64,000 nucleotides of DNA from Utricularia gibba. Taxonomy: Eukaryota > Plantae > Magnoliophyta. Below the pieces are notes generated by a model. It searched no databases, was not told the DNA's origin, and saw only the letters and a list, made by a program, of their open reading frames with translations. The DNA is taken from positions 248,001-312,000 of the forward strand of contig NEEC01000014.1 of NCBI GenBank assembly GCA_002189035.1, given 5' to 3'. Positions 1 through 54,203 of the stretch are shown here, piece by piece (the stretch's first letter is position 1; the number at the start of each line of letters is the position of its first letter). Both the position numbers and the translations under genes were made by a program.

Positions 1-1465
1 AGACATGACATATGAGGAGAGCATATGATAGACTAATTCAACCTTCAACATTCTCTTGGTTAAACCATGAAAACTATAAAGTATAGAAAAATAGAGATAT
101 TTAGGAGAAATGAAAAAGAAAAAAGATATATTGTTTTGGAGAGAATTCGAAAACAAGAGACCATATATCCAAGAGGAGGGTGGTGAAATGGATCAATAAA
201 GAGGAGCCACCTCAACCGAGACAAAGACCCAAGAAATTATTCTCAAGCGCTATTGCTCCTAATTGGAAGCAATATTGTGGAATCATAACTCGATTTATTA
301 TCATTTGTAGGATTGAACATTTTACTTCGAGCTTGTCGTTTTAATGTTATGACTATAGCTATGAACATGATTTTACCTTTGTTTTATGAGGTTTTGATTT
401 ATTTTGGTATGGGTAGATAGATATTATGTGGTGTGCTTTAGGGAAGAATAGGAAGAGATGTAATATCAGCCTAAGGTTTGAAAACTTGTGAATGTTTATG
501 TGAATTTTTCTAACAAATTGGAATAGATGTAGGAAAAAAGAAAAAAGAAAACTCAATCATAGAGGTAGACAAAAAAAGTGAGATATATTTTCATAAGTAT
601 ATGAATTAATAGAATTCACAGGTAGAAATTAATAGAATTAGTTAGATTTTGTCTTATTTAGCTTAAGAAATGGTGAATCTAAGTATAAGGTGATATTAGA
701 AAACTCGTAAAAATTAAAAAAAATAACCATAAAAATTGGTTCATGTAGAACTAGACCGTCTGAAGTTAGTTAATATTTTTGAATCCTAAAATTCAATATC
801 AAGTGAGGACATTCCCCAGAAATCATTGAGATACTTACGTTTTAATTTTTTAAATTAAGGTCTAATGTTTTATATTACTTTATTTAATTTATATTTTATT
901 GTTTACTTACATTTAATTTTATTTACAACTTAAAATATAATTAACCTGTGTTTTTTTGCCTATTTTCACATCACAATTATTATTTCTTTGAGTTCAACTC
1001 CAAAACCCACTATTCATCTTGTATCTAATTTATATTTAATGAGGATAACAGTTTTATGAATTTCATTGAATACAAAAATTTCTAATTTACTCGACGATGT
1101 GAAATTATCGTTTATCAAATATTTGTATCATTATTATTTATTTGCTATGTTGATAACCCACGCTGCACATGAATGAATTCGTGGTTACATGAATACTTGG
1201 TATTATTATTTTTTGTTTGTATAGGAAATTGCTTTTTTTTTTTAGTTTTTTTTATTTGTGGTGCACTCACTCTGAAAAGATTCCCTACGTGAGCATACGG
1301 TCAAATGAAATAATAACATTCATTTCCTCTAATTCATTATATATAGCGTAGGTTCAATTCTTGCTTATGTCTCGTACAACTCGTTATGCGATATCCATCT
1401 CCATTGACATTTTCCTACGTGCGAGTGAAGGTAATCTGAAGGCTTTACTTATTCCCGTTCAGACC

Positions 1466-2408
1466 ATGGAACGCCAAACACCATTCAAGATGTTACTGAC
1501 GCAATCTATCCGGAATGGGTTGAAACTCGTTTTCTTTTTTCTACTACTTTTGGGATGATCCTCGCATTTCTTTACAAAGGTATGCCCATCTTGAGTATAA
1601 CCCTAACCAAGGCAGTTATCAATTCCAGCATCAAACCAACCTCCCTCCAAGTGGATTCGACCGACGTTCTTGCTATAGCAGGTATGATTTCCTCTTAACG
1701 CAAAGATTAAAGAACGGAAAACCTTCTTTATATCTTCTCTCCAAGTTACGGAGCTATGAGGCTCGGCACAAGAGATGTGCTCCGTGTACATTTCTATATA
1801 ACATGACAATTCATGCCCTCAAATTCAACATGTCTACTGCACTCTTCGAATGCAAGTACGTTATATGGCTCCCTTCGGATGGATTAGGAAATAGAATCCT
1901 CAGTCTTGCTTCCACATTTTTGTATTCTCTTCTCACTGATAGGGTTATCCTCGTTGATCTCTTTTGTGAACCCTTTTCCTGAGAGTTTTTGGTTGCTTCC
2001 TTTGGACTTCCCGTTGGCTCATAAATTGGATGGTTTTAACAAAGAATCTGAGGAATCCTTCGGGAAACTATTGGGAAACAACTTGTTGGGTAATTCAGGT
2101 ATCTCAACCCCTCCACAACTCTACGCATACATCCACCTATACATAAACTTTGGAGAAGTCGATAAACGTTTCTTTTGTGATGAAGATCAATCATATGTAA
2201 CGGAGGTACCCTGGTTGATGATCCTGTTGTATCTATATTTCGTCCCCCTCTTTCTTCTCGATGACATGTTTTGAGCAGGAACTAGATAATCTATTTCCTG
2301 ACAAGGAGAGTGTGTTTCATTTCTTGGCCCAGTATCTGTTCCATCCAACCAATTCCGTTTGGGGCTCGTGAGCAGCTTCTACAAAACTTATCTATAGGGA
2401 TTTGATGT
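1466..2408 (+). pseudogene. GT37 fucosyltransferase-family pseudogene, 5' ~60%, frameshifted and truncated
   Basis: Starts MERQTPFKMLLTQS like 60844-62442; contains DGLGNRILSLAS and FCDEDQSYVT; has stops and frameshifts; homology ends after GFDV at 2408. Confidence 0.93.
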
Positions 2409-4925
2409 GTGCTCCTGATCACCAAGAAATTCATGCCAATTCTTCCTGATTCGTATCCCCTTTACCATCGCATTTGTGCTCGTATATGTGTGGAGATGAT
2501 CGGTATCCATCTCTTAATCAGAACCTGATATTGTTGCATAGTAATTGCAAATACGCCTTGCCCACCGCACACCCTATCACCGTCGTCGACATAACCAGCT
2601 GCATCCCAGAGCATGTACTCGCGCACAGTGAATTGGGACTTTAAAACTCGGATAGCAACAATATTGGTTCCGATTAAGAGATGCGACACCGATCTTCAGC
2701 AGCACCGCTGCCAGCATGAGCCCGACAGTAAAGGTGACGCGGAACAGGGAGAATTGTTGTGAATTGATGACGCTTAGTGTTTTTAGCTTATAAAAACAAT
2801 GTGTTTTAATGTAACTTTTCAATCTTTTAGTAATTTTACTAATATTAATATTTTTATGCCCAGAAGTTGATTAAATAATTGATTTAATAGTTTCCTAGTT
2901 GTTAATAACAATTTTTTCCCAAGTCTTAATAGCAGCATTTCCAAAATCACCAAGTAAATTCTTACAAGCACTATGGCATGTAGCAAGTTGGAAGAGATTA
3001 GACTAAAGTGACAAATTCTTCAACCCTGGATATTTTCATTAGCATCCGTAAACTGACTTCCTTTCAAATTTTTAAGTCATAAAAAAACTGTCAAATTACT
3101 TACACTGATGATCCACAGTTGGAAGGTTTAACTGTGATTGAACCATTGATTTTTTTTAATTTTTTTCTTATGAAAAAATATGACATTTTGATTAAATCGT
3201 AATTGAACCATGATTGAATCATGATTTTTTTATATATTTTAAAATGGTTCAGATTTAATTCAATTGTTTTGATTAATGATTCCCTATTCACTTTCTTCAT
3301 ACGTGAGTTTGGTTTTATTAAGTTTATCATTTTTCATGGAATACAACCCATAAAGCCATTTCAAAGCTCTTCGGCAAAATGAAAGGGATTTGACTTGGTT
3401 CTTTGTTGCTTTTGCACAAGTCATGTATAATTCTTGATCGGAGTCATCATTTTCCCTTCTAGCAAACTTAGAAAACATTTAAAATAGATACGAATATAAC
3501 TTATAGTTTACTTCTCTATCAAAGATGATTTCTTCCTTGATTGTATGTAATAACCGATGCTATCATCTAGTAACTACCACATAGTATCTAAAACCAAACT
3601 ACAAAATAACATATAGATCACCCCTGTAAGTATCCATCCAAAAGCCTTCACCAATCGTTGCCTCATCTATTTTGAATTTATATTTCAACTGAGTGCCCGT
3701 ACACCAAAATTAGTATGGCATGCTATTTTAATCAAGTATGACTTCAGACAAGCTTCCAGGAGGTAGGCTCTAAAGCTCTAATCCACTCCCAATATAAATA
3801 GTATGTTGCAATTTACTGCACTTAAAATGGGCCCAATGCATTTTCCTATTTACTAATGCTTTTGTGTTAAACTTTTCTTTTACAATGAGTTGCATCAAGT
3901 TCAACCGATTGTAAAATAAATACTACAAAAGATTACAATAATTGTCTAATTTAATATTTTTGAATTTTTCATAAAAATTGTTGAGTCAAATCCAAAAAAG
4001 TCATGAGTTTAGATTGAGTCAGATTCAATTCCGAATTCATCCCCAAATTTTAAAACACTGGCACAAGTCATTTAGATCGCCCACCCCTCGCATCCGTGCA
4101 ATTCAGTTCATATATGAGTGTTTCTTTAACCCAAAAAAAAAAAAAGGACTTTCTGCATTTATGCATGTCATCCTTACACTTGGGCCATGCTGATCTGTTG
4201 TATGTTGTTCCAATTTTATCGGGTGTCCACGTAGAGACATGCGTTTCTTCTTCTTCTTCTTCTTCCGTTTATCAGCAAAAAGAAATCACTTTTTTTTATT
4301 GTGATGACAAAACGCTTAATATAACAAGTCAGCCCACATCGCCGTTTCTTCTTTAATATAAATCGTACCTCCATAAACCAGATCTTCTGAAGGAAAAACA
4401 CGAATTCATAGTTATAAAAAACCATTGTTTTTTGTTTGGTTGATTCAGCTTCGTTATGCAATAAAAGGGCTTTGTAAGAACACTAATCCTTACGAAACTC
4501 CAGTATGTTCTGAACTTAAAAATAGGGGCTTATTATTCTATGCATAGCGTCTTAATAGCTTCACTTTTTACTTCAATAACCCTAAAGATGGCAATATCCC
4601 AAGAGGTGGAGATTTGGCGTTCGGGGGTGGTTGCACGATGCCGCATTTCTGGTTATCTGTACGTGCAAAGTTTCCCAAACGAAACATGTAGAATAAGAAC
4701 AGCAGTGTAATTTTTGTATAGACCTCATTCATTCATCTCTTACATAAACGGAGGAAAAGACACTCATATGCAGTCCAAGGGGTAGTTGCATGAGCACAAA
4801 TGGGTTAAGTGACAGCACCTTATTACACTTGAGGACTGTTTATTGTCGATTACATGACATAGGAAAAGATACGGGAGCAAGTGCCGGGGAATTCGTAGAA
4901 GACAAACGCCCACATGTCGTCTTTG

Positions 4926-5462
4926 TTATATGAATTCCCATTTGGGTACACTCGCACTGATAATAGTACCAGCCACTGGTGGTGGAGGGTTGGCAAATAA
5001 TTTTGCATTTAGAAACAGAACCCCATTAGTCAGGTTTGAACAGGCAGCTGCTTGAAGTTGAATGGACAGACGACAAGGTAGCCAAGGAAACAGGAAAACA
5101 ACATTAGAGAAAGAATTTGCGGCCAATGTGAAGGCAACGGTTCCTGTGGTACCCGTTGAAGTTGTGGCCACCACAACCTCCCGTTGCGGCAGTGGCGGTG
5201 GCTGTGGTGGTGGCAGTGGCGGTAGCACTGGCGGTGGCAGTGGGACTGCAAGACAAAGAAGCCTTACAGGTTGGTTGAGAAGAGGAGGGATTGTAGTACC
5301 AGGATTACAGTTCCCGTCACTGGTACAACACACGTTGCTGGTTAGGTTCAATCCGAACATTCCCGGAAAGAGGTTGGCGGATGCCGGCACCATGGCCGTG
5401 ACAAACAGAATGACCATCCCGAGGGATAATGGAATGGACAGAACAAGGTTTGTATGAGCCAT
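4926..5462 (-). CDS. Secreted phylloplanin/Pollen Ole e 1-like protein with internal Pro-rich tract (178 aa)
   Basis: Hydrophobic signal peptide; NLTSNVCCTSDGNC..PVRLLC..VVATTSTGTTGTVAFTL..CRLSIQLQAAACSNL follows the phylloplanin-type Cys spacing; TATA box 56 bp upstream of the ATG. Confidence 0.75.
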   Translation of the reverse strand: MAHTNLVLSIPLSLGMVILFVTAMVPASANLFPGMFGLNLTSNVCCTSDGNCNPGTTIPPLLNQPVRLLCLAVPLPPPVLPPLPPPQPPPLPQREVVVATTSTGTTGTVAFTLAANSFSNVVFLFPWLPCRLSIQLQAAACSNLTNGVLFLNAKLFANPPPPVAGTIISASVPKWEFI

Positions 5463-7448
5463 CTCTTTTCCACGTTAGGCAGTGAATGACGGAGGGTAAG
5501 AAATAACCACTATTTATAAGCGGCTTCGAACTTGTTCGCACAGGAGACTTTTCCAAAGGCAATTAAATCCCTAGACAAATAGAGCAATTAACCGGTCGAT
5601 TGTATTACATACCTGTTCATTTATTGTTCAAATCCATAACCGGGGCGAGTTTGATTAGAGATTAATTATTAGCACATGGTCAGTGCCCACTCGCCAATTC
5701 AAGTCAAATCCCGCGTGGAGGCATCCTTTTCCTCCAATTACACCATCTCTTCGTACCAACTCTTAATAAAGTGTCAAAGAATCGTCAGTAAGAAAAGTGA
5801 AACAAGTGCCAATGATTATGTATCTTGAATATGTGTGTTTTGGTGCACATGAAAAAGCAACTGCTCTTCTCTCTGTGGAAGTGCTCTCTCGGCATTCAAC
5901 TCTGGGATACGTAGGCATACGCTAATTTTGCGGCCAAGCCACTCTAAGAAATAGTATTTTGTACTCTGCAGTAGTTACTCTCAATACAAAACATAAAATA
6001 ATGCTGTGAGGGCCGTAGATTAACGGCTCTTTTGCATTGATTCTGATGCTTCACATTTTCAAAAGATGGCTTTTATGATCCAAGGGTTTTGAGACGAACC
6101 AACAGCTTATTTTTGCCAAGAAAAAAAAAGTTTCATTGCGAAGTTCGCGTGCGAGTGTTCCAGAAGCATGACGCAGGTACAGCAGATGAGAAATGGGGTC
6201 TTGAATTACTGCAACTGTAAACGAGAACAACTGACGAGGTTTAATTGGGGAGCTACGACTAAAACCCTAAACCCTAAAATGAGTGAGGGCAATAACGAGG
6301 TTTAATTACATGCCTAGCTACGCAAAATACACTCAAAGCCCTAAAACATAGATTGCGCAATTACGCGATAAAACCTTCTGAATTTAATTAATTCCCGTGC
6401 ATTCATTCACATTTCAGAATTATACTTTTAGGGGCCCCTCTGAATCCGGAAAGACATCATTATGTCTACTTTCATAGACCCTGAAATCTAAATGTCTCAC
6501 CTACGCGCCATGACTCAACGTTAGTGGATGAGAGATTTAGAAAAAAAAGAACTTGGTATGTTATTTAAAGAAGGATTAACTTTCATGTGTTTTATAGAAA
6601 ATTTTACGATTGAATTAACTGAATTTTTATAGGATATTGATTATAGACAATATTATATAAAATATTATCAAAATACTGATAATTCAAAATCTAATTAAAA
6701 AAGGTATTTTTTTTCATCGTAACCTTAAATTAGAGTGATTTTTGATAAAAGGTTTAAGATGATGAATTTATTCACAAAAGAAGAGAGAATAGCAAATATA
6801 TGTGTAAAAAAAAATTTTTTGACGTAAGAGGGATAATAGTATTTTTTTGAATTATGAGATTGGTTAAATCCATCTAAATATTGATAAGAAAATTAAATCC
6901 ATCCAAATAATGGGTTTGTGTATCACTATTACTTAAGATTTAAATAATAAAATTTTGAAGATATCTATTAGATATTAATTACAACAAAACTTATGAATAA
7001 CTTGTATTATTTAAGATAAAATCAACATTTCATATATTACTGATCCTTATGGGTGGTTTGTTTCGTAGATAAGGTTGTGTAGATATAGCTTATTCGAGTA
7101 TATGCAATTGTATTTTGTGTGTTTAAAGAGTGATTCATATTTGAATTTTTATGGAAGATATTATTTGATAACCTATTATAAATTGTCATAGATTTTGTGA
7201 AAAAGGTTTAAGATACGAAAACATAAATTGAAACTCAAGTGACGTCACTTAATTAAGGGAATTAGTTATTGAGATTTTGTTTCCTACTTTGTATCTCATT
7301 GTATTGATTTTTACTGTTTTTTCCAAATAATCGGTTATAGAAATAAGTAAAAATCTATACTCACTTACATTCTATTATAAGTAGACATAAAAATAGCCTC
7401 ATGTTATTTTTATTAGAAGTTAGAGCAACGAGGTATACACTAATAGGT

Positions 7449-8118
7449 GGATCCCTCTATCGGAAATCCTTTGATGGACCCCTACTGAGATGTATCGGAA
7501 AAGAACAATTTCAAGACTTTATAACTGATTTGCACGAAGGAGAGTATGACTGTCATGTTGGAATGTGATCTTTGTACAGAAAAGCATTGAGAAGTAGGTA
7601 TTACTGACCAACTATGAAAAAAGACATCATGGAGGTAGTAAAAAAATGCAAGGTGTGCCAGTACCATGCGAGTATACCTAGAAAACCAATAAACAATCTC
7701 ACCGTTCTTCTGCTCTCATGCCCATTTGACCGTTGGGAGTAGACATCATGAGGCCTTTTCCCCAAACCTCTGGTCAAAGTAAATTTGTTATCATAGGAAT
7801 TGAATATTTTTCCAAATGAGTGGAAGCAGAAGCTGTGACAAAAATATCAGAGGAAACCGTTATCTGATTTTTATGGAGAAATATTTTCATTTGATTCGGA
7901 ATATCCTGGGAGCTGATAACCGATAATGGGACCTAATTCGCTGGGGGAAGATGGATACATGTTTGGATAGATATTTAATCAAGCACAACTTCACCTCAAT
8001 ATATCACCCAGAGCAATGGTCTTATGGAGGTTACAATCTGAATTCTCAAATAAGGTATCAGAACCAAACTTGAGGATTTCGGAGGATCACGGGCAGACCA
8101 GTTGGACGAGGTGCTATG
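7449..8118 (+). mobile_element. Decayed Ty3/Gypsy integrase fragment in the IR spacer
   Basis: Translates as GSLYRKSFDGPLLRC..GYY*PTMKKDIMEVVKKCKVCQYH (Zn finger)..VDIMRPFPQTSGQSKFVIIGIEYFSK*VEAEA..ELITDNGT*F, with stops and frameshifts. Confidence 0.88.
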
Positions 8119-9642
8119 AATGTGTTAAGTTGATATATGGGAGATGAGTTGGGTAGAAAGTCTAGTGAACTGAACATTTCCACTATTCGGTTTAAGTATT
8201 TGATTCTGGATGAATACATCATCAATCAGGCTCAAGATGGCCGAATACCCCGGGGTATAGGAGAGAGACCCCTTCCTCACTTAAGTCTCCCAATCCCCAT
8301 AGCATACTTGGAAAGCAGTCTTCGCTTTCTACTCCACCCCCTCATTGTTCAATTTCTACATATATTTGCTATTCTCTCTTCTTTTGTGAATAAATTCATC
8401 ATCTTAAACCTTTTATCAAAAATCACTCTAATTTAAGGTTACGATGAAAAAAAATACCTTTTTTAATTAGATTTTGAATTATCAGTATTTTGATAATATT
8501 TTATATAATATTGTCTATAATCAATATCCTATAAAAATTCAGTTAATTCAATCGTAAAATTTTCTATAAAACACATGAAAGTTAATCCTTCTTTAAATAA
8601 CATACCAAGTTCTTTTTTTTCTAAATCTCTCATCCACTAACGTTGAGTCATGGCGCGTAGGTGAGACATTTAGATTTCAGGGTCTATGAAAGTAGACATA
8701 ATGATGTCTTTCCGGATTCAGAGGGGCCCCTAAAAGTATAATTCTGAAATGTGAATGAATGCACGGGAATTAATTAAATTCAGAAGGTTTTATCGCGTAA
8801 TTGCGCAATCTATGTTTTAGGGCTTTGAGTGTATTTTGCGTAGCTAGGCATGTAATTAAACCTCGTTATTGCCCTCACTCATTTTAGGGTTTAGGGTTTT
8901 AGTCGTAGCTCCCCAATTAAACCTCGTCAGTTGTTCTCGTTTACAGTTGCAGTAATTCAAGACCCCATTTCTCATCTGCTGTACCTGCGTCATGCTTCTG
9001 GAACACTCGCACGCGAACTTCGCAATGAAACTTTTTTTTTCTTGGCAAAAATAAGCTGTTGGTTCGTCTCAAAACCCTTGGATCATAAAAGCCATCTTTT
9101 GAAAATGTGAAGCATCAGAATCAATGCAAAAGAGCCGTTAATCTACGGCCCTCACAGCATTATTTTATGTTTTGTATTGAGAGTAACTACTGCAGAGTAC
9201 AAAATACTATTTCTTAGAGTGGCTTGGCCGCAAAATTAGCGTATGCCTACGTATCCCAGAGTTGAATGCCGAGAGAGCACTTCCACAGAGAGAAGAGCAG
9301 TTGCTTTTTCATGTGCACCAAAACACACATATTCAAGATACATAATCATTGGCACTTGTTTCACTTTTCTTACTGACGATTCTTTGACACTTTATTAAGA
9401 GTTGGTACGAAGAGATGGTGTAATTGGAGGAAAAGGATGCCTCCACGCGGGATTTGACTTGAATTGGCGAGTGGGCACTGACCATGTGCTAATAATTAAT
9501 CTCTAATCAAACTCGCCCCGGTTATGGATTTGAACAATAAATGAACAGGTATGTAATACAATCGACCGGTTAATTGCTCTATTTGTCTAGGGATTTAATT
9601 GCCTTTGGAAAAGTCTCCTGTGCGAACAAGTTCGAAGCCGCT

Positions 9643-9650
9643 TATAAATA
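9643..9650 (+). promoter_or_regulatory. TATA box of phylloplanin-like gene (mirror at 5511-5518, minus)
   Basis: TATAAATA in a plausible position upstream of ATG 9699. Confidence 0.65.
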
Positions 9651-9698
9651 GTGGTTATTTCTTACCCTCCGTCATTCACTGCCTAACGTGGAAAAGAG

Positions 9699-10235
9699 AT
9701 GGCTCATACAAACCTTGTTCTGTCCATTCCATTATCCCTCGGGATGGTCATTCTGTTTGTCACGGCCATGGTGCCGGCATCCGCCAACCTCTTTCCGGGA
9801 ATGTTCGGATTGAACCTAACCAGCAACGTGTGTTGTACCAGTGACGGGAACTGTAATCCTGGTACTACAATCCCTCCTCTTCTCAACCAACCTGTAAGGC
9901 TTCTTTGTCTTGCAGTCCCACTGCCACCGCCAGTGCTACCGCCACTGCCACCACCACAGCCACCGCCACTGCCGCAACGGGAGGTTGTGGTGGCCACAAC
10001 TTCAACGGGTACCACAGGAACCGTTGCCTTCACATTGGCCGCAAATTCTTTCTCTAATGTTGTTTTCCTGTTTCCTTGGCTACCTTGTCGTCTGTCCATT
10101 CAACTTCAAGCAGCTGCCTGTTCAAACCTGACTAATGGGGTTCTGTTTCTAAATGCAAAATTATTTGCCAACCCTCCACCACCAGTGGCTGGTACTATTA
10201 TCAGTGCGAGTGTACCCAAATGGGAATTCATATAA
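9699..10235 (+). CDS. Secreted phylloplanin/Pollen Ole e 1-like protein (identical mirror copy)
   Basis: Identical 178-aa ORF; TATAAATA at 9643-9650. Confidence 0.75.
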   Translation: MAHTNLVLSIPLSLGMVILFVTAMVPASANLFPGMFGLNLTSNVCCTSDGNCNPGTTIPPLLNQPVRLLCLAVPLPPPVLPPLPPPQPPPLPQREVVVATTSTGTTGTVAFTLAANSFSNVVFLFPWLPCRLSIQLQAAACSNLTNGVLFLNAKLFANPPPPVAGTIISASVPKWEFI

Positions 10236-12752
10236 CAAAGACGACATGTGGGCGTTTGTCTTCTACGAATTCCCCGGCACTTGCTCCCGTATCTTTTCCT
10301 ATGTCATGTAATCGACAATAAACAGTCCTCAAGTGTAATAAGGTGCTGTCACTTAACCCATTTGTGCTCATGCAACTACCCCTTGGACTGCATATGAGTG
10401 TCTTTTCCTCCGTTTATGTAAGAGATGAATGAATGAGGTCTATACAAAAATTACACTGCTGTTCTTATTCTACATGTTTCGTTTGGGAAACTTTGCACGT
10501 ACAGATAACCAGAAATGCGGCATCGTGCAACCACCCCCGAACGCCAAATCTCCACCTCTTGGGATATTGCCATCTTTAGGGTTATTGAAGTAAAAAGTGA
10601 AGCTATTAAGACGCTATGCATAGAATAATAAGCCCCTATTTTTAAGTTCAGAACATACTGGAGTTTCGTAAGGATTAGTGTTCTTACAAAGCCCTTTTAT
10701 TGCATAACGAAGCTGAATCAACCAAACAAAAAACAATGGTTTTTTATAACTATGAATTCGTGTTTTTCCTTCAGAAGATCTGGTTTATGGAGGTACGATT
10801 TATATTAAAGAAGAAACGGCGATGTGGGCTGACTTGTTATATTAAGCGTTTTGTCATCACAATAAAAAAAAGTGATTTCTTTTTGCTGATAAACGGAAGA
10901 AGAAGAAGAAGAAGAAACGCATGTCTCTACGTGGACACCCGATAAAATTGGAACAACATACAACAGATCAGCATGGCCCAAGTGTAAGGATGACATGCAT
11001 AAATGCAGAAAGTCCTTTTTTTTTTTTTGGGTTAAAGAAACACTCATATATGAACTGAATTGCACGGATGCGAGGGGTGGGCGATCTAAATGACTTGTGC
11101 CAGTGTTTTAAAATTTGGGGATGAATTCGGAATTGAATCTGACTCAATCTAAACTCATGACTTTTTTGGATTTGACTCAACAATTTTTATGAAAAATTCA
11201 AAAATATTAAATTAGACAATTATTGTAATCTTTTGTAGTATTTATTTTACAATCGGTTGAACTTGATGCAACTCATTGTAAAAGAAAAGTTTAACACAAA
11301 AGCATTAGTAAATAGGAAAATGCATTGGGCCCATTTTAAGTGCAGTAAATTGCAACATACTATTTATATTGGGAGTGGATTAGAGCTTTAGAGCCTACCT
11401 CCTGGAAGCTTGTCTGAAGTCATACTTGATTAAAATAGCATGCCATACTAATTTTGGTGTACGGGCACTCAGTTGAAATATAAATTCAAAATAGATGAGG
11501 CAACGATTGGTGAAGGCTTTTGGATGGATACTTACAGGGGTGATCTATATGTTATTTTGTAGTTTGGTTTTAGATACTATGTGGTAGTTACTAGATGATA
11601 GCATCGGTTATTACATACAATCAAGGAAGAAATCATCTTTGATAGAGAAGTAAACTATAAGTTATATTCGTATCTATTTTAAATGTTTTCTAAGTTTGCT
11701 AGAAGGGAAAATGATGACTCCGATCAAGAATTATACATGACTTGTGCAAAAGCAACAAAGAACCAAGTCAAATCCCTTTCATTTTGCCGAAGAGCTTTGA
11801 AATGGCTTTATGGGTTGTATTCCATGAAAAATGATAAACTTAATAAAACCAAACTCACGTATGAAGAAAGTGAATAGGGAATCATTAATCAAAACAATTG
11901 AATTAAATCTGAACCATTTTAAAATATATAAAAAAATCATGATTCAATCATGGTTCAATTACGATTTAATCAAAATGTCATATTTTTTCATAAGAAAAAA
12001 ATTAAAAAAAATCAATGGTTCAATCACAGTTAAACCTTCCAACTGTGGATCATCAGTGTAAGTAATTTGACAGTTTTTTTATGACTTAAAAATTTGAAAG
12101 GAAGTCAGTTTACGGATGCTAATGAAAATATCCAGGGTTGAAGAATTTGTCACTTTAGTCTAATCTCTTCCAACTTGCTACATGCCATAGTGCTTGTAAG
12201 AATTTACTTGGTGATTTTGGAAATGCTGCTATTAAGACTTGGGAAAAAATTGTTATTAACAACTAGGAAACTATTAAATCAATTATTTAATCAACTTCTG
12301 GGCATAAAAATATTAATATTAGTAAAATTACTAAAAGATTGAAAAGTTACATTAAAACACATTGTTTTTATAAGCTAAAAACACTAAGCGTCATCAATTC
12401 ACAACAATTCTCCCTGTTCCGCGTCACCTTTACTGTCGGGCTCATGCTGGCAGCGGTGCTGCTGAAGATCGGTGTCGCATCTCTTAATCGGAACCAATAT
12501 TGTTGCTATCCGAGTTTTAAAGTCCCAATTCACTGTGCGCGAGTACATGCTCTGGGATGCAGCTGGTTATGTCGACGACGGTGATAGGGTGTGCGGTGGG
12601 CAAGGCGTATTTGCAATTACTATGCAACAATATCAGGTTCTGATTAAGAGATGGATACCGATCATCTCCACACATATACGAGCACAAATGCGATGGTAAA
12701 GGGGATACGAATCAGGAAGAATTGGCATGAATTTCTTGGTGATCAGGAGCAC

Positions 12753-13694
12753 ACATCAAATCCCTATAGATAAGTTTTGTAGAAGCTGCTCACGAGCCCC
12801 AAACGGAATTGGTTGGATGGAACAGATACTGGGCCAAGAAATGAAACACACTCTCCTTGTCAGGAAATAGATTATCTAGTTCCTGCTCAAAACATGTCAT
12901 CGAGAAGAAAGAGGGGACGAAATATAGATACAACAGGATCATCAACCAGGGTACCTCCGTTACATATGATTGATCTTCATCACAAAAGAAACGTTTATCG
13001 ACTTCTCCAAAGTTTATGTATAGGTGGATGTATGCGTAGAGTTGTGGAGGGGTTGAGATACCTGAATTACCCAACAAGTTGTTTCCCAATAGTTTCCCGA
13101 AGGATTCCTCAGATTCTTTGTTAAAACCATCCAATTTATGAGCCAACGGGAAGTCCAAAGGAAGCAACCAAAAACTCTCAGGAAAAGGGTTCACAAAAGA
13201 GATCAACGAGGATAACCCTATCAGTGAGAAGAGAATACAAAAATGTGGAAGCAAGACTGAGGATTCTATTTCCTAATCCATCCGAAGGGAGCCATATAAC
13301 GTACTTGCATTCGAAGAGTGCAGTAGACATGTTGAATTTGAGGGCATGAATTGTCATGTTATATAGAAATGTACACGGAGCACATCTCTTGTGCCGAGCC
13401 TCATAGCTCCGTAACTTGGAGAGAAGATATAAAGAAGGTTTTCCGTTCTTTAATCTTTGCGTTAAGAGGAAATCATACCTGCTATAGCAAGAACGTCGGT
13501 CGAATCCACTTGGAGGGAGGTTGGTTTGATGCTGGAATTGATAACTGCCTTGGTTAGGGTTATACTCAAGATGGGCATACCTTTGTAAAGAAATGCGAGG
13601 ATCATCCCAAAAGTAGTAGAAAAAAGAAAACGAGTTTCAACCCATTCCGGATAGATTGCGTCAGTAACATCTTGAATGGTGTTTGGCGTTCCAT
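12753..13694 (-). pseudogene. GT37 pseudogene, mirror copy
   Basis: Mirror of 1466-2408; lacks the extra C, so its middle ORF is 154 aa rather than 122 aa, but it is still disrupted. Confidence 0.93.
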
Positions 13695-16600
13695 GGTCTG
13701 AACGGGAATAAGTAAAGCCTTCAGATTACCTTCACTCGCACGTAGGAAAATGTCAATGGAGATGGATATCGCATAACGAGTTGTACGAGACATAAGCAAG
13801 AATTGAACCTACGCTATATATAATGAATTAGAGGAAATGAATGTTATTATTTCATTTGACCGTATGCTCACGTAGGGAATCTTTTCAGAGTGAGTGCACC
13901 ACAAATAAAAAAAACTAAAAAAAAAAAGCAATTTCCTATACAAACAAAAAATAATAATACCAAGTATTCATGTAACCACGAATTCATTCATGTGCAGCGT
14001 GGGTTATCAACATAGCAAATAAATAATAATGATACAAATATTTGATAAACGATAATTTCACATCGTCGAGTAAATTAGAAATTTTTGTATTCAATGAAAT
14101 TCATAAAACTGTTATCCTCATTAAATATAAATTAGATACAAGATGAATAGTGGGTTTTGGAGTTGAACTCAAAGAAATAATAATTGTGATGTGAAAATAG
14201 GCAAAAAAACACAGGTTAATTATATTTTAAGTTGTAAATAAAATTAAATGTAAGTAAACAATAAAATATAAATTAAATAAAGTAATATAAAACATTAGAC
14301 CTTAATTTAAAAAATTAAAACGTAAGTATCTCAATGATTTCTGGGGAATGTCCTCACTTGATATTGAATTTTAGGATTCAAAAATATTAACTAACTTCAG
14401 ACGGTCTAGTTCTACATGAACCAATTTTTATGGTTATTTTTTTTAATTTTTACGAGTTTTCTAATATCACCTTATACTTAGATTCACCATTTCTTAAGCT
14501 AAATAAGACAAAATCTAACTAATTCTATTAATTTCTACCTGTGAATTCTATTAATTCATATACTTATGAAAATATATCTCACTTTTTTTGTCTACCTCTA
14601 TGATTGAGTTTTCTTTTTTCTTTTTTCCTACATCTATTCCAATTTGTTAGAAAAATTCACATAAACATTCACAAGTTTTCAAACCTTAGGCTGATATTAC
14701 ATCTCTTCCTATTCTTCCCTAAAGCACACCACATAATATCTATCTACCCATACCAAAATAAATCAAAACCTCATAAAACAAAGGTAAAATCATGTTCATA
14801 GCTATAGTCATAACATTAAAACGACAAGCTCGAAGTAAAATGTTCAATCCTACAAATGATAATAAATCGAGTTATGATTCCACAATATTGCTTCCAATTA
14901 GGAGCAATAGCGCTTGAGAATAATTTCTTGGGTCTTTGTCTCGGTTGAGGTGGCTCCTCTTTATTGATCCATTTCACCACCCTCCTCTTGGATATATGGT
15001 CTCTTGTTTTCGAATTCTCTCCAAAACAATATATCTTTTTTCTTTTTCATTTCTCCTAAATATCTCTATTTTTCTATACTTTATAGTTTTCATGGTTTAA
15101 CCAAGAGAATGTTGAAGGTTGAATTAGTCTATCATATGCTCTCCTCATATGTCATGTCTACTCGATTTTATGTACATAATTAGACGTGATTTGCATCATA
15201 GTACTATTAATACTTGCAAAAACATTAAAAAACATAATATGGGCTAAACCATCAATTTACTCTACATTTACACATAAAAAATACAAATAACATTAAAATT
15301 ATCAAAATATTAAAAACCATAATTCAAACATCTAATTGCACGGTTAAACATTGATAGAAAAACACTAACGAAATATGTATTTTGAACTATATTACATATA
15401 TTACGAAAATACTTCAGTTTTTTGTATTAATTACGTATCAATATGTAATACTCAAATATACAATATGATACATATATCAATAGTCTAGCTATTAGCTCAA
15501 TTGGATCTGTTATTATATATATGCATAAAATGTTGAGTTTAAATGCCAAAACAATTTTATCAACTTCTTTTGAGTAAAACGAAAACAAATTGTCTACCTA
15601 TTAGCTTAATTGTTCCACGTGGCTTGTGAGTAAACCGAAAACAAATAATTATTTTTTTTTAAAAAAAGATTACTTATCCAACTAGCGCTTACCATGGGAT
15701 TCGTTCCATTAATTAAGCATCCGGAATTTAAGAAAGCCTAAATATTAATAAATAAATATTGGGGTTGAAGGGAAGCAATGCCTAAGACACCCCTAATTTA
15801 TAAATGTAACTATTTATATATCACGATATGGAATCTTGATTTTAGTATTGAGCTCATTAATATAGCAATTTTGTGGTAGAAAACATAGCAATGCGGAATC
15901 TTTATTTAAAAATGCACGAGTCAAATGAGGGCTTGGTGTTTATAAAATGTAATATCAAATGAAATTTAATTCATTTCTAAAATTAAGAATAATATGACAA
16001 CAAATATATGAGATCACAAGTAATAGTATATTAAACTCTCAACATTAAATTTACTAAACTTAAAAATGTAGATGATTTTTAATTTTTAATTTTTTTAAGT
16101 TTTTTAAAGCATATTATATTTGAGTCTACTATTTTATAAGGTAAATAAGATTAAATTTACCCGATTTCTACCTGTAAATTCATTTGTCTACTTTTTGTCC
16201 TACCTCTAATGGTATGGTTGATGAGGGTCGTGAAATTAAGGATGAAAATTAGATGGATGAATTGGATGCTGTGGTCAAATTCATTCAATTGAATGTTAAC
16301 AAAGATGAAAATAAGGATAAATTCAGATCTTTTTTCTGCATTATCATCTCGATGTTGTATTCTATATGTTGGATTGAATTGTTTGTATACATGTAAAGCT
16401 AACAAAGATGAAAATAAGGATTACACGATTTGCTCACCTGAACATAACCAGATCGGGCTAAACTGCAAGCCTACACTTCTCCAACTCAAATCAAATCTAC
16501 TATTATTTTTTAATGCATTAGTGCATCTCGATCAATATAGATCGACACAATATTCACAAGCAAGATGAATAATCGATAATATATTAACAAATTTCAGAGA

Positions 16601-18861: not shown

Positions 18862-19312
18862 TTGTTTTAGTGTTTTTTTAATAAAAATTAGTTCTCTCAT
18901 TATATTAAATATGATATATTAAAATTAAGACTATTTAGAAAAAATATAAATAAAATAGTACTATAATGTAAAGATTTTTGAAATAGCACTATTTAACCAA
19001 TTAGTTTGCATATCGGTAATTAGCTAAATTATCCTACAAACAAATGACCCATTGCTTTTCCAGGGTTTCTTAATTAATGTCCTAGAACTGTGTTCCAAAG
19101 CTATGCTCAGATCCCTCAAGGGGGGTTGATTAGAAATTTAGGCGCTGTAAAAATTGTATGTGAGAAAAGTAGGGAGTTTTAGTATAAAATTTTTACCATA
19201 GTGTAAGGATGCTTACATTCATAAATGACCCCTCACGGGGGCTATACAATGATATAAATGGGGGAAGGCTGTGCGCTTAATATCACCTTGTAGTAGTCAC
19301 TCGTATACAAGG

Positions 19313-22300
19313 ATGACGACGGTTGGCCGCTCTATTCCTCTAGTTTTTCTCTGTCTTGCTGCGGCAACCACAGCTTTTCTTCATTGCCCACCGCCACCAC
19401 CACCGGATTCACCTCCTCCGCCCTCACCGCCACCACCCGAATCACCTCCTCCACCCTCACCGCCACCGCCGATTCACCTCCTCCACCCTCACCGCCACCA
19501 CCGGATTCACCTCCTCCACCCTTACCGCCACCGCCCAATTCACCTCCCCCACCCTCACCGCTGTTGGAATAAGGTGTATTGGAGAAGGGATGCTCTATCC
19601 CACATTGCTAGTTGAACACATGTTCAACTAGTTTATAAGGGAAGACAACCCAATACATTTGATGGGCTTGAGAGTAAGTTGGGCCTCACGCGCCCGCAGG
19701 GTCTTAATTTATTAGATCGGGTTGGGCTCCGGGTTGGGCTCCCGGAGGCTTCTCGAAGGGTCTCTTGAATTTTGGGGGATCGTGAAATCTTTAGGACAAC
19801 ATTTATGTGTCTGAGGTTTTCTTCTTTTTTTGTGTTCGATTTACAACAATCTAAAGAATATTCTCGATGGATCCGACTGGTGCCTCTTTGGAAAACCCTA
19901 ACCCGCCGCTGCCCGTGCCTCCGGTGACCTGCACACTGTTCACCAACGCCACTCCGACACTGATGACCTCCCTATTGTAAATCTGGTTGCTATGCCGGCA
20001 TTGCAGATAAATCCTGTCCATCTGGTCCAGAATCCGCTTGTCTCCGTGCCACAGGTCACCTCTGGTCTTCACGATCTGTCCCTGAGTCATCCGGTTGTGA
20101 GTCGCCAGTTCCCTGATACTGCAAAAATCGAGCCCTTTGATGGAAAGAATTTTCGGCGCTGGAAAGATCGCATCTTTGAGTTGCTGGATATGCATGGCAT
20201 TGCCTGGGCTCTTGAGGTTTCCAAACAGGAAGCCACTAACTCTGATATCCTCGCTACAGGCTGGGATTGAGCGAGCCGGGTATGTCGTCATACCATTATT
20301 ACCACCCTTGGTGATAGTCTCTTCGATGTGTATGTAGTCTTCAAGGATGCTGCCTTCATATGGAAGTCGATGACTACCAAGTACACTGCAGAGGAGGCTG
20401 TGACATCCAGATTTGCAGTCACTAATTTTCTGCAGTGGGAGATGACTGATGACAAGGAGGTGGTAGTCCAAATCAATGAGTTCCATCGCCTCCTGGACAA
20501 CATGACTACTCAGAACTTTGATCCACAAGCTGCCACGAGGATGGGATGACTATAAGGCAAAGATTCGTCAATTTGATCGCAAGATGACTCTGGACCACCT
20601 GATCAATCACATTGCAATTGAAGAGAGGCAGAGGAAAACAGGTAAGAAGCCTATGAGCCATGAGTACCCGGCGAATGTTATGAAGAACAAACAAGGGAGG
20701 TACAAATCTCGCTCCAAACCTTATGATTCTGGTTCTCATATTGTATTAGCTCTTACTAATGATGGTATCAAAAAGAAAAAGGGCCATTGTTTTGTCTGTG
20801 GTAAGCTAGGGCACTATGCAGCACAGTGCAAGCACAGGAAGACTGGCAAACCTGGTAGTGAGCTTCCCAAAGCCAATGTTAACATGGCTCAGGGGGATGA
20901 TAATGATGAAGTGATTGTCACCATGCTGGGTTACTTGAACCTAATTGAGGCTAGTGGTGACTGGATCATGGACTCTGGAGCAAACCGTCATGTTTGCTCA
21001 AGGAAGGATTACTTCTCCTCCTATAGTCCACTTGGAGGTGACAATCACGTGATCAAGTTTGCTGACAAGTCTACTACTCCAGTGCCTGAAAAGGGAGAAG
21101 TCACCCATAAGTTCACCTTAGGGAAGACTGTCCTTCTGAGAGATGTGTTGCATGCCCCTGCCATAAAGACCAATGTCATCTCAGCTATCCAGATGGATAA
21201 GTGTGGCCTAAACATCAACTTAGGCAATGGGGTTGTTGTGGTGATGAAGAACAATGTCTTTGTTGGGAAAGAATACATTGGTAGTCAGGAGTTATATGTA
21301 ATGAATGCTATCATTATTTTTGAGAATAAAGTTGATTCTGCTTACATGATGTGTTCTTTTGATATTTGGCATGCTAGGCTAGGTCATGTGAATTATACCT
21401 ACATGAAAAGGATGCAGTAATTAAATTTGATTCCTAGATTGCATGAGTTACCTACTAAGTGTGAGACTTGGGTAGAGGCAAAGATGACTAAGAAATCATG
21501 CTTTTCTGTGACTAGGGAATCTGAGTTGCTTGCATTGATTCATTCAAATGTATGTGATTATAAGATGTGTGTATCTAGATGTGGCAATAAGTTTATGGTT
21601 ACTTTTATTGATGATTGCTCTAGATATACTCGTGTATTTGCTGAAACATAAATCTAAAGCATTTGAGAAGTTTCTGCTATTCAAAGCTGAGGCAGAAAAC
21701 CAACTTGACAAGAAAACAAAGAGAGTCAGATCTGATAGAGGAGGTGAGTATGTATTATTCAAAGACTTCTGTGAGAAGTATGGAATAATATATGAGACTA
21801 CTTCTCCCTACTCTCCTGAGTCAAATGGAGTTGCTGAGAGGAAGAAGAGGACATTGAAAGAAATGATGAATTCAATGCTTATTACTTCTGGCACTCCAGG
21901 TGAAACGTGGGGGGAAGCGATTCTCACTACTTGTCATGTTCAGAATAGGATCCCACATAAGAAAACAGGCAAAACTCCATATGAGATATGGAAAGGTTAT
22001 GCATCAAACCTTAAGTATTTAAGGGTGTGGGGGTGCTTAGCAAAGGTGATGTTACCTGATCCTAAGAAAAGGAAGATTGGGTCAAAAACATCTGATTGTC
22101 TGTTTATTGGATATGCACAAGGGAGTGCTGCATATCGATTCCTTGTGATCAAGAGTGATGTCCTTGATCAGCATACAATAGTGGAAACAAAGAATGCTGA
22201 ATTCTTTGAACAAATCTTTTTTCTAGTAGGAAAACACCAAGATGATGGTGATGAGACACCTATCACTGAACCTGCTGAAACTAGTGAACCCTTGGAGGAA

Positions 22301-25300
22301 GTGCCTCTGAGAAGAAGCAATAGGTAGAGGATAGAGTCTAGCTTCGGCGATGACTTCTATGTGTATCTCACTGATCCTCTGACCTACCATGCTGCAATTA
22401 CTTCCAGATGCTCCATTGTGGATGGAAGCCACTCTGAGTGAGATGGACTCGCTCCATCATAACAAGGTATGGGAAGTAGTGGACCTACCTCTTGGGGCAA
22501 AGTCAATTGGGAGCAAGTGGATCTTTAAGAAAAGGTTCCTTGCAAATGGTAAAGTAGACAAATACAAGGCTCGCCTTGTAGCAAAGGGTTTCACTCAGAA
22601 ACCAGGTGTTGACTACTTTGAGAAATTTGCCCCAATGGTTCACTTCTCTGCCATACGAGTACTCTTTGCAATGGCTCTGTACACAATTGGACAGTACACC
22701 AAATGGATGTCAAAACGGCATTCTTGAATGGTGAATTGGAGGAAGAAATCTACATGTTTTAGCCTGAGGGTTGCATAAAGGCTGGAGATGAACACAAAGT
22801 GTGTCGACTGAAGAAGTCACTGTATGGCTTGAAGCAAGCACCTAAACAGTGGCATGAGAAATTTGATAAAGTCATAACCTCATTAGGCTTCACATCAAAT
22901 ATAGTCGAAAGATGTGTTTATTCTAAGACTTTTAATGATCAATGTGTGATCATAACCCTCTATGTGGATGATATGCTAATCTTTGGGCCAAACCTTCACA
23001 CTGTGCTAGAGGCCGAGAAATTTTTAGCTTCTAAATTTGAGATGAAGGACATGGGTGAAGCCAGCTACATATTGGGAATCAAAATTGTGAGAAATGAAGA
23101 AGGGTTTCTACTGACTCAAAGTCATTACACTGAGAAACTCTTAGAGAAATTTGGGTTCCATGAGGTGAAACCAAGTCGTACTCCATATGATCCCAGTATT
23201 AGCTTGAAGAAAAATAGAGAGGACCCTATGTCCCAGAGTAAGTATGCTCAGATAATGGGCAGTGTGATGTATATAATGAACCATACCCGACCTAACATAG
23301 CGTATGCAGTGGGTAGACTGAGTCGATACACACACAACCCAAATGAAAGACATTGGGCAACTGTGAGATGGTTATTGAGATACCTCAAAGGGACAGCTGA
23401 CCATGGCATTCAGTATCAGAGAGAACCCACTGTACTGGAAGGATATAGTGATGCTAGCTAGGTATCTGGGAAAGAAGAGCCAAAGGCCACAAGTGGAATG
23501 ATTTTCACATTAGGCAAAGGCGCTGTGTCCTGGAAATCCACCAAACAAACCTTGATAGCTAGATCAACAATGGAAGCTGAGTTCATTGTATTAAATCTAG
23601 CAAGAATTGAGGCTAAGTGGTTGAGAAACTATGTGATGGGAATACCACTCAAGCAACATGGATCCTTCTCAGTGGTGCTGCATTGTGACTGTCAAGTAGC
23701 AATTGTCACTGCCAAGAATCGATCCTATAATGGAAGAAATATCCACATGCGATTGAGGCATGGAACATTGAGACAGCTGTTGAAAACCAGTGTGATCTCT
23801 GTTGAATACGTGAGAACGTCAGTGAATTTGACCGATCCACTGACCAAGCCTCTCAATAGAGAGAAGATCTGTGAGCTTTCGAGGGGAATGGGACTAATGT
23901 TGTTGAGCAAATGGCAGTGATGGTAACCCAACCTGTGAGAGGAGAAACACCTTGATCAGGTTCATATGGGTAATAACAAGTCACTGCTAGTTTTGAGAAC
24001 ACAAATTATGGCAAGTGGTCATTCCTATGGAATATGTGTTCTACCTGCAAAGTGATGGATGAGTATTTGCTCTTAATGTCTCTGTAACTGATGAAATTCA
24101 GTAACACATAGAAGTAGGGTATGTTAGGCAGAGACACCTATATAAGTGTGGAGGATAGCCACTCCTATGAGATATATGTGATCTCTAGAGCACTTATGAA
24201 CCAACAGGAGTTGCACCGGGCTTATGGGTGCGCTTGAGCGTTAAACAGTCGATAAATGTCGGGGTAGGCTTGATGTGGTTGGCTATGCCTCTGTATCACA
24301 ATATAGTATTCGGTTCATAGAAATACAATTTCACCGTCTACTTAATCATACATGTGTAGGGCAATCAAGAGATTGGTTCATAATCGAAAGATACCATTCT
24401 CCAGACATTAGAGCCTACATGACTTGGGCCTTCTCCAATATGTGGGGGATTGTTGGAATAAGGTGTATTGGAGAAGGGATGCTCTATCCCATATTGCTAG
24501 TTGAACACTGTTCAACTAGTTTATAAGGGAAGACAACCCAATACCTTTGATAGGCTTGAGAGTAAGTTGGGCCTCGTGTGCACGTAGGGTCTTAATTTAT
24601 TAGATCGGGTTGGGCTCCCGGAGGGTTCTCGAAGGGCCTCTTGAATCCCGGGGGATTGTGAAATCTTTTAGGACAGCGTTTACGTGCTTGAGGTTTTCTT
24701 CTTCTTTTGTGTTTGATTTACAACAACCGCCACCACCGGATTCACCTCCTCCACCCTCACCGCCACCGCCCGATTCACCGCCATCGCCCGATTCGCCTCC
24801 CCCACTCTCACCGCCACCACCGGATTCGCCTCTGCCACCCTCACCGCCACCACCGGATTCACCTCCTGCCCCTCACCGCCACCGCCGGAATCACCTCCTC
24901 CCCCTTCACCGCCACCACCGGATTCACCTCCTCCCCCCTCACCGCCACCGCCCGATTCACCTCCCCCACCCTCACCTCCGCCGCCCTCACCTCCGCCACC
25001 CTCACCGCCGCCACCGTAGCTGCTGCCACCACTCTATGTTAAATTGATTATTTCGAGCGTCCTATGTTGTTCTCCTACTCGGATACGCCCTCCAGTCCTA
25101 CTTTTCCCACCTTGACTTAGCCCACTTGGAGGTGTAACCGTAACTCTGAGATGCCAAAACCAAGACTTGCAGACTGCTACTACTGATTCAAATGGTCGAG
25201 TTATCATCTCGGTGTTTGTTAATTTTTTTGCTATTCCGTCTTTCAGAGTCGTCGTCCCATCAACACGCCAATGCAGAAGTTATTCTCCACCATGGTTACT

Positions 25301-26846: not shown

Positions 26847-28871
26847 ATGATGGGAGCATATTTCAGTAATTCATTGATAGTGAGAGAAATGGATGGTGAT
26901 TAGTTTTATAAATGATCCAAAGAAAAGCGCTCAACAATTTAAGTAGAACCAACCGAGGGGTCAACTACCCACCCTCCATTTCTATCACACACACTCATTA
27001 TAAAAAATTATATTTAGTATGTATATTTTTTATCATACAATCATTTTATAGTAAATATTTTTCAAAATCATTTCTTTTTTTCTATTTGGGATGACCATAT
27101 TGAACTTGCTCGCGGTGTCCGTATCAAGAGAATGGAATCTGTTGGAGTATGCACTTAATCAAGCTACTAAAGGCATGTTTGGTATGCGAGATAAGTGGTA
27201 TTTTCATTAGTGATTCAACAAACTCACCATAATCTCTTATATGTAGTAATAATGAAACTTGGGGGTGGGTCAGATTGTTAAAACCAATGTAAATTTATCT
27301 AATCACAAATAAATTCAATTATACATACCAAACATAAAAATGTATAAGATATATTATACTTAATATACATCAATCACAAATAATCTATAACTCTCATTAT
27401 ATAATCTCTTGTACCAAACATGCCCTAAGTCCTTCCAGTAGGTTGACGATGAGAATTTGTCAAGCGGATCTGATGGGGTTCTTGTCATAGTAGGTATGAC
27501 TCCCTCTTGCATAAGCATCCTGCAATAAGAAACCCCTCCGCAGATCTCATTTCCAAGTTAAAAAGTTACGAAAGTTTTCACAAACAGTGCGGCCCAAATA
27601 CATATTTGTATAACATGTCAATAGATGCCCTCAAAAGGAACATGTCTCAAGTGGCATCCGAATGCAAATACATCATATATATTGCTTCTTCTGGCTTGGG
27701 GAATAAAATGATAGCCCCTGCCTCTACATTTTTATATGCTCTTCTCACTGAAAGAATTCTCTTAATCGAGGATCAAGAGCTTTATTCTCTATTTTGTGAA
27801 CCCTTTCCTAAAAGTTCATGGCGGCTTCCCTCCGACTTCCCATTGTACGCTAGACTTCGTACTTTTTATAAGGAATCTAAAGAAAGCTTTGGAGACTTGT
27901 TGAGAAACGATTTATTAGGTAATTCTAGTAGTTCATTGCCTCAACCCTATGTATACCTCCATCTGGATCCAACATTTGGCAGTTTTGATAAGCGTTTCTA
28001 CTGTGATGAAGACCACTCATATATTCAGGATGTGCCATGGTTGATTTTATGGTCAAATCAATATTTCATCCCCTCCTTGTTCTCAATAACATCTTTTCAG
28101 AAAAAGCTGCATGATTTATTTCCAGATAAAGAAACAGTTTTTCATTTTTTAGCATCCTATTTGTTCAATCCAGAAGATTCGGTTTGGGGGTTAGTTAGAA
28201 GATTCTATGATACTTATTTATCTGATGCTGACCTCAAATTGGGGATCCAAATTCGAACTAATACTTTCTACAACACCCCATTCGAAGATGTTCTTAGTCT
28301 AATTGTCTCATGCACCACGAATGAGGGTTTACTTCCATCAGTTTATCAGCAAGAGGAAGGAAATTTGACCAAACCCATGTTCAAAAGGATGAAAACAGTT
28401 GTACTACTGACTTCCTTGAGCCGTGACTACTTTGAGCATATCAGGAGGATGTTTTGGGAGCATGCTACTGTAACCGGAGAGACGATCGCAGTTCACCAAC
28501 GAAGCTTCGAAGAGAACCAGAATACTGGGAATCTAATTGATGATCGAAAAGCCTTAGCAGAAATGTACTTGCTTAGTTTAAGCGATGAGTTGCTTACAAG
28601 TCCATCATCAACTTTTGGGTATGTGGCTCAAGGCCTTGGTGGGTTAACACCATGGATGATCTTGATGTCCAAGAACAAGACAGGCCATTACCATCCATGT
28701 CGCCGACTTCCTTCAATGGAGCCATGCTTCCATGTGCCACCATACTACGATTGTAAGACAGGAAGTGATAAATATCCAAATTCTACTGAGCCTCATACCA
28801 CACAGTGCCTGGATGGGATATGGGGCTTGGGAGGACTGCAGCTAGTTAACCACTTCGACGGTACAACTTAG
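26847..28871 (+). pseudogene. GT37 FUT-like gene with disrupted N-terminus and open catalytic-domain ORF (27507-28871)
   Basis: Paralog of 39515-41122. The ATG-proximal region is replaced (~26876-27075), a MITE sits at 27171-27425, and there is a CAG>TAG stop and a 1-nt deletion before 27507. The 454-codon remainder is uninterrupted. Confidence 0.88.
27171..27425. mobile_element. Tourist-like (PIF/Harbinger) MITE, 255 bp
   Basis: TIRs AGGCATGTTTGGTA / TACCAAACATGCCC (13/14 match); TAA TSD at 27168-27170 and 27426-27428. Removing it restores colinearity with the 39515 paralog. Confidence 0.92.
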
Positions 28872-49200: not shown

Positions 49201-49536
49201 TGCTACTCTGTGATGGATTAGTTAAAGGAGGAGACGTTTTTTAGCTTTCGAACTTGAAGCCTGGCCTGGTTTTGAGCTTCCGAACTTGAAGTTAGACACT
49301 AAGAGACTTGGGTGAAACAGTTGAGAGAGATACAGCAGTATTCTTTTGACACAAAAAATATTTTTTTTATACATCTGGTTTCAATTCATATTTATACTTC
49401 AGTGCTGAATCGCACCCCAGGTCTAACGGTTATATTTGTAGCCATTGGAGGTCCCTATCTCGGGCCGCTCACAAGTGTGATTGGGCCTATCGAGTCCAGC
49501 CCAGTAGGTTGTTGGTACAGCCTGCATGGTTATCAC

Positions 49537-54090: not shown

Positions 54091-54184
54091 TTCAGCTTTC
54101 ACAATTCCTGCAAGAAAGATTTATGAACGAGTATAATTGTAAGTGTGATACAGTTAATCTTTGGGATCTTGTGGGACTTTTCAG

Positions 54185-54203
54185 AATCCCACAGCTGTCA
54201 CCA
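54185..54203 (-). other. Primer-binding site complementary to a tRNA-Leu 3' end
   Basis: Plus strand AATCCCACAGCTGTCACCA abuts the LTR and matches my recollection of the plant tRNA-Leu(UAG) 3' end including CCA. Confidence 0.75.

Follow-up and report, generated by a model that had tools for sequence, protein, structure and literature searches.

Large inverted repeats with nearly identical arms have been described in several settings. In the palindromes of sex chromosomes (P1-P8 of the human and primate Y and X, and those of the willow W), gene-bearing inverted arms of kilobase scale and more than 99.9% identity flank a unique spacer, and the identity of the arms is ascribed to arm-to-arm gene conversion. 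Fold-back or template-switch inverted duplications, among them human inverted duplications with disomic spacers of 1-10 kb and products of fork stalling and template switching or microhomology-mediated break-induced replication (FoSTeS/MMBIR), consist of an inverted duplicate with one ancestral and one novel junction, and unique spacers of kilobase scale are typical of them. The Arabidopsis PAI1-PAI4 and maize Mu killer silencers contain inverted gene-fragment copies that keep perfect 21-mers to an intact nearby paralogue. Long-read sequencing also produces fold-back artefacts of perfect inverted identity, through a missed SMRTbell adapter or palindromic chimeric reads; these are spacerless or adapter-spaced and lie at contig ends. 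Here, we analysed 64,000 nucleotides of the Utricularia gibba genome (assembly GCA_002189035.1, contig NEEC01000014.1, positions 248,001 to 312,000 of the forward strand; hereafter the window), which begin with a giant inverted repeat whose two arms of at least 6.8 kb surround a spacer of 1554 nt.

The locus resembles each of these systems in part. As in the sex-chromosome palindromes, its arms are inverted, of kilobase scale, nearly identical, gene-bearing and separated by unique DNA, whereas the visible arms reach only 6.8 kb or more, lie in a tandem gene cluster of autosomal type and are mostly pseudogenic in content; moreover, gene conversion would have to be postulated here, and the centre is without confirmation in independent reads. 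Its topology fits the fold-back duplications, with an inverted duplicate, a kilobase-scale unique spacer and possibly one ancestral and one novel junction. Unlike them, it is interstitial with no visible terminal deletion, its spacer combines AT-rich DNA with a retroelement fragment, and the reads point to an earlier pair whose inner limit differed. Inverted gene-fragment copies with perfect 21-mers to an intact nearby paralogue recall PAI1-PAI4 and Mu killer, but the fragments here are more than 10 kb apart, convergent and a small part of each arm. Perfect inverted identity with a sole difference at a homopolymer is also what long-read fold-back artefacts show, but the present repeat has a unique spacer and lies inside a large contig. 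Among these known kinds, the locus would count as a small palindrome or inverted duplication on DNA of autosomal type, within tandemly arrayed genes.

Two mirror-image arms surround a unique spacer

The assembled repeat consists of the following parts, none of which is assigned to a strand.

1-6803, left arm, truncated by the window start, defined by exact comparison with 8358-15159
6804-8357, unique spacer of 1554 nt, AT-rich in its left part and with retrotransposon debris to the right
8358-15159, right arm, whose junction at 8357/8358 is bridged by independent short-read contigs

A palindrome is expected to have two inverted multi-kilobase arms close to 100% identical and an unduplicated spacer between them. 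Both are found here. By exact comparison, positions 1-6803 (6803 nt) are the reverse complement of positions 8358-15159 (6802 nt) with no substitution and one 1-nt indel, namely a run of five C at 2244-2248 (forward strand) against four C at 12913-12916. An earlier note on this DNA had claimed this mirror relation with that single difference, and the comparison bears it out. A repeat search returned two collinear inverted blocks, 1-2247/12913-15159 and 2245-6808/8353-12916; the inner limits of the second take in two mismatches, and we therefore use 6803 and 8358 as the strict arm ends, where identity breaks off sharply. Arm identity of such length is beyond chance. The same note had remarked that the left arm runs to the window edge, as it does, and the arm length of 6.8 kb is a lower bound, since the window start truncates the left arm and sequence beyond 15159 may still belong to the right one. 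Outside the window, the contig continues for at least 37 kb on the left and 2.8 Mb on the right, so the repeat is internal to a multi-megabase contig. We rejected a fold-back of the contig as a whole, as an SP4/Ole e 1 gene 37 kb left of the window has no mirror copy at 46.8-52.5 kb.

The left part of the spacer (6804-7368, 565 nt) is AT-rich with a GC content of 0.24. Its right part, of about 1 kb, is decayed retrotransposon integrase debris (about 7347-8144, forward strand), in which the Pfam family Integrase_H2C2 matches 7608-7739 with E = 4e-4, short of the curated cut-off. Each 31-mer of the spacer occurs once in the window, the spacer is not self-complementary, and no other sequence within the 64 kb resembles it. 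A search for a missed-adapter remnant with the adapter core gave no match at up to 3 mismatches. A PacBio chimera caused by a missed adapter does not fit the unique, asymmetric spacer of 1554 nt, the lack of adapter-like sequence or the position internal to the contig.

Short-read contigs support two copies and one central junction

As independent reads we used Logan contigs from older sequencing runs, aligned to positions 2701-8700: X1 and X2 from one 2013 sample, X3 from another 2013 sample and X5 from 2019. According to PMC8333044, the raw long reads of the assembly are kept on a private server of its authors, outside the public run archive. The contigs of X1-X3 show no base substitutions relative to the assembly and thus represent the same genotype. 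The right junction at 8357/8358 is bridged in all three of these runs, by X1 record 7 (7369-8745), X2 record 15 (7478-8491) and X3 record 23 (7804-8380).

Mean contig depths in X1 and X2, respectively, are as follows.

Arm 2366-4546: 10.1 and 9.5
Arm 4517-5970: 6.6-9.7 over the two runs
Arm 5941-6245: 6.0 and 6.7
Arm 6216-6445: 3.3 and 5.4
Contig over the spacer and inner arm: 5.3 and 5.8
Contig of a third, partial copy overlapping 4132: 4.7 and 4.0

The third partial copy calibrates single-copy depth at about 4-6. On this scale, the outer and middle arm (2366-5970) is present in two copies, at about twice the single-copy depth, and the inner arm at 5941-6445 stands at single-copy depth. The pattern in X3 is alike, with 3.1-3.3 over the inner arm against 3.9 over the spacer. 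Median GC content is 0.41 at 5941-6445, 0.39 in the right spacer and 0.43 at 4517-5970; GC bias was rejected as the cause of the depth step, as the inner arm matches both of the other segments. The two-copy state of 2366-5970 and the bridged right junction argue against a wholly fictitious repeat.

These contigs also bear on the single difference between the arms. At homopolymers at 4132 (mirror 11029), 7734 and 7942, short-read contigs of two samples have one extra base compared with the assembly. All three are consensus errors left over from the long reads; that at 4132 occurs in both arms. Because the short-read contigs disagree with the assembly at these three places, the C5/C4 difference falls within the homopolymer error rate of the assembly, and it is not evidence that the arms have diverged.

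On balance, we favour a genuine inverted segmental duplication in a tandemly duplicated cluster of cell-wall genes (xyloglucan fucosyltransferase, FUT, and extensin/Ole e 1-like genes), whose centre is either a recent change in the assembled plant or an assembly error confined to the centre. We give this reading a probability of roughly 0.55; within it, a duplication that is real exactly as assembled has a chance a little short of even.

A diverged genotype apparently carries a pair with a different inner limit

The 2019 run X5 shows scattered base differences from the assembly and represents a diverged genotype. Over 4500-6100 its contig depths sum to about 70-110, as against about 33-45 further on, and three sites (4555, 5301 and 5913) each occur in two equally deep states. 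This suggests that X5 has two slightly different copies ending near 5976, and that the genotypes separated after the pair had arisen, with homogenisation of the copies in the reference lineage. The X5 copies differ from each other at no fewer than three sites and the copies of the reference genotype at none, a comparison limited by the fact that orthology between the X5 copies and the two assembly arms is not established. Samples of two different genotypes thus agree that the shared part of the two copies ends near 5970-5976, whereas identity in the assembly goes on to 6803. The loose ends of the diverging contigs had no match in the window at up to 4 errors and no similarity to the local continuation above that of shuffled sequences, which indicates that the diverging copies run into unrelated DNA outside this window.

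One X5 contig of low depth (5.2) joins 6796 through a single C to 8387 on the same strand, which places the inverted arm ends side by side with a loop of 23 nt. The join is no more than 30 nt from the assembled arm end, and a random library chimera would land there with a chance of about 2%. Either a sequence-driven fold-back artefact or a real spacerless allele could account for it. X5 is labelled as the same species. Arm positions 3100-4500 and most of the spacer (6800-8350) have hardly any coverage or none at the main depth of this run, but are represented by contigs of low depth (3-5). The X5 contigs total 730 Mb, far more than those of the other runs, and a reference-like genotype may be mixed with a diverged one in X5.

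The age of the pair bears on another possible origin, a brand-new fold-back duplication made in one step by template switching, with an ancestral right junction, a novel left junction, no older pair and no gene conversion. The absence of any substitution in 6.8 kb fits such an event, as does the presence of only the right junction in the 2013 reads, which is expected if those plants predate or lack it. But the 2013 reads are already two-copy for 2366-5970, and so is X5, with copies ending near 5976, so that a pair existed earlier. No ancestral allele lacking the duplication was recovered. We regard a single recent step as unlikely.

The centre as assembled lacks half of its expected support

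The favoured duplication must account for several observations at the centre that weigh against it. In X1-X3, no contig covers 6461-7368, which leaves the left junction at 6803/6804 without independent support. The contig graphs of X1 and X2 have a common fork at 5941-5970, and the X5 contig departs from the arm at 5976 into unrelated sequence. Positions 5941-6445 have 0.6-1.2 times the depth of the spacer in three runs, where a true palindrome would give 2 times; these values are contig means from noisy, low-coverage Logan contigs, and X1 and X2, although from the same sample, are 30% apart on one segment. The left part of the spacer has zero depth in X1-X3. The gap at 6461-7368 is partly due to drop-out of AT-rich DNA. 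The segment concerned is the following.

5941-6803, no strand assigned, innermost arm part, the second copy of which is without read support

We also considered a 2013 structure with a deletion that joins 5970 to 7369. It was rejected, as X1 record 7 stops exactly at 7369 with no extra letters.

These observations raise the alternative of an assembly error, in which the plant has two copies only up to about 5970 and the long-read assembler made the left inner 0.83 kb with the 6803/6804 junction, or the whole left arm; in the extreme form, the second copy is located elsewhere. An error of this kind fits the single-copy depth of 5941-6445, the fork, and the lack of any contig over the left junction and left spacer in the three runs, which come from two samples of one genotype. 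It is also consistent with the sole arm difference, which lies in the length of a homopolymer, a type of sequence at which this assembly has proven errors elsewhere. But no known artefact mechanism fits, since the palindromes made by reads with missed adapters have no spacer and a random fragment end at their centre, and two false joins would be required inside a multi-megabase contig. A search of the runs for the left junction and left spacer (6774-7368) found 15% of the sampled words in X7 and 6% in X9 and returned no other run; it carries no information on the junction, but the presence of words from 6804-7368 in these two other runs identifies the left spacer as real DNA. Finally, the X5 join of the inverted arm ends would be unexpected with a single inner arm. 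We consider an assembly error on this scale, its extreme form included, possible but doubtful.

Either plants differ in the symmetric centre or it has been mis-assembled. The earlier note had proposed junction reads and arm depth as a test for an artefact, and the outcome is divided: contigs bridge the right junction and give 2366-5970 about twice the single-copy depth, whereas none spans the left junction and the depth of 5941-6445 is close to that of a single copy. Of the three origins that it had offered (fold-back, conversion and artefact), a wholly fictitious repeat is disfavoured by the reads.

Under the favoured duplication, both genotypes would have had an older inverted pair whose shared part ended near 5970, and its copies would have been homogenised in the reference lineage. 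Later repair in the assembled plant could have copied from the right arm past the old boundary to 6803, with end-joining to AT-rich DNA at 6804. The arms would be letter-identical through very recent arm-to-arm copying, be it the duplication itself, later conversion or break-induced copying. Nothing points to selection for the structure.

A more far-reaching version would be a palindrome with an unstable, polymorphic centre, in which closely related plants have three centre structures and breakage of the centre followed by repair through copying is ongoing in the plant germline. The three centres would be the assembled one, with arms to 6803 and a patchwork spacer of 1.55 kb; that of the 2013 reads, with one arm ending at about 5970; and that of the 2019 run, with the 6796-C-8387 join. 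We put this forward only tentatively, at long odds.

The arms carry gene debris and one intact reading frame

The arms contain the following features, each present as two mirror copies.

1466-2409, forward strand, dead 5' fragment of a xyloglucan fucosyltransferase gene (FUT, GT37), amino acids 1-325 of about 532, with frameshifts; found by tblastn with the intact FUT open reading frame (ORF) at 60847-62442
12752-13694, reverse strand, mirror copy of the dead FUT fragment, by arm identity
4137-4238, reverse strand, degenerate U6 snRNA copy with a disrupted ACAGAGA box; Rfam RF00026, 57.9 bits, and alignment
10923-11024, forward strand, mirror copy of the degenerate U6, by arm identity
4929-5462, reverse strand, intact ORF of 178 codons with a signal-peptide-like start and a Cys/Pro-rich linker, from the ORF list
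9699-10232, forward strand, mirror copy of the 178-codon ORF, by arm identity

At the DNA level, arm positions 1342-2408 are 85% identical to 62557-61469, the region of an intact FUT gene, and the three further FUT genes in the window are more distant from the arm fragment than the gene at 60847-62442. The intact FUT paralogues match Pfam PF03254. The C4 state of the right arm preserves the FUT reading frame over amino acids 177-310, and C5 shifts it.

The FUT fragments of both arms converge on the centre. This arrangement raises the possibility of a functional hairpin-RNA locus, in which read-through of the convergent fragments would give double-stranded RNA and small RNAs, and these would silence the FUT paralogue nearby. 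Consistent with such a role, 106 of the fragment's 1047 21-mers also occur in the FUT gene at 60847-62557, whereas the other three FUT genes have no 21-mer in common with the fragment. But only about 124 nt of homology upstream of FUT are kept and the fragments are 10.3 kb apart. In addition, the small-RNA machinery of this species has been reported to be atypical, with a truncated DCL3 and an atypical small-RNA repertoire in Utricularia gibba (PMC8333044). Together, these points make a silencing function improbable.

A third, partial copy of the degenerate U6 segment (4128-4273) lies elsewhere in the genome, in an X1/X2 contig of depth 4-4.7 whose left part is unrelated.

The copies of the 178-codon ORF diverge from the centre. 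The product had no Pfam match, and a search for sequence homologues returned none. In an ESM Atlas feature search, Ole e 1/AGP31 clusters ranked first with a score of 0.93 and 198 of 256 features in common, which makes an Ole e 1/AGP31-like protein possible, as a lead only. Exact-protein look-ups were blank for this ORF and for 10 ORFs, two of which span the junctions, and two exact-pattern scans of metagenome contigs with inner-arm sequences gave no match.

The content of the arms also bears on a fold-back transposon with long terminal inverted repeats, for which the arms would be the terminal repeats. Long inverted arms around a short unique centre are what such an element would look like. 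But the arms are made up of pieces of host genes (FUT, U6 and the Ole e 1-like ORF) and not of subrepeats or remains of a transposase, and there is no further copy within the window. A transposon is thus very improbable indeed.

Neighbouring genes and elements

The remainder of the window contains four apparently intact, intronless FUT ORFs of 454-539 amino acids with PF03254, at 27480-28871, 39503-41122 and 43875-45485 (forward strand) and at 60844-62442 (reverse strand), together with two small FUT fragments at 55389-55586 and 60033-60185. The FUT copies of the array are 54-59% identical to one another at the protein level. A SAM-dependent methyltransferase domain (PF03141/PF08241) is encoded between FUT copies by an ORF of 429 amino acids (35802-37091, reverse strand). 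A copia-type insertion at 19851-23461, which contains gag, Pol_BBD and pre-integrase ORFs, appears to split an extensin-like Ser-Pro4 gene (19271-19615 and 24742-25010, forward strand) that has a signal-peptide-like start. A second copia-type element (49353-54612, reverse strand) contains a gag-protease-integrase ORF of 994 amino acids and a reverse transcriptase ORF of 417 amino acids. It is flanked by direct repeats of 277 nt that are 95% identical (49353-49629 and 54336-54612), and a diverged inverted relative lies at about 57.1-59.6 kb.

Implications

A segment present in two inverted copies probably exists. The case for a perfect palindrome is only half made: the assembly has two mirror copies, and short reads confirm two copies of most of the block and one central join, but not the other join or the innermost 0.8 kb. 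As a feature, the locus is of an ordinary kind. Should its centre prove to be mis-assembled, the locus is a warning that perfect giant inverted repeats in this assembly need both junctions confirmed, by long reads or PCR, before a biological reading. If the structure is true, a small secreted-protein gene has been doubled, and the locus can be used to study how inverted duplications originate and how their centres are revised. It would then add one more young or homogenised palindrome to a very small plant genome with fast turnover.

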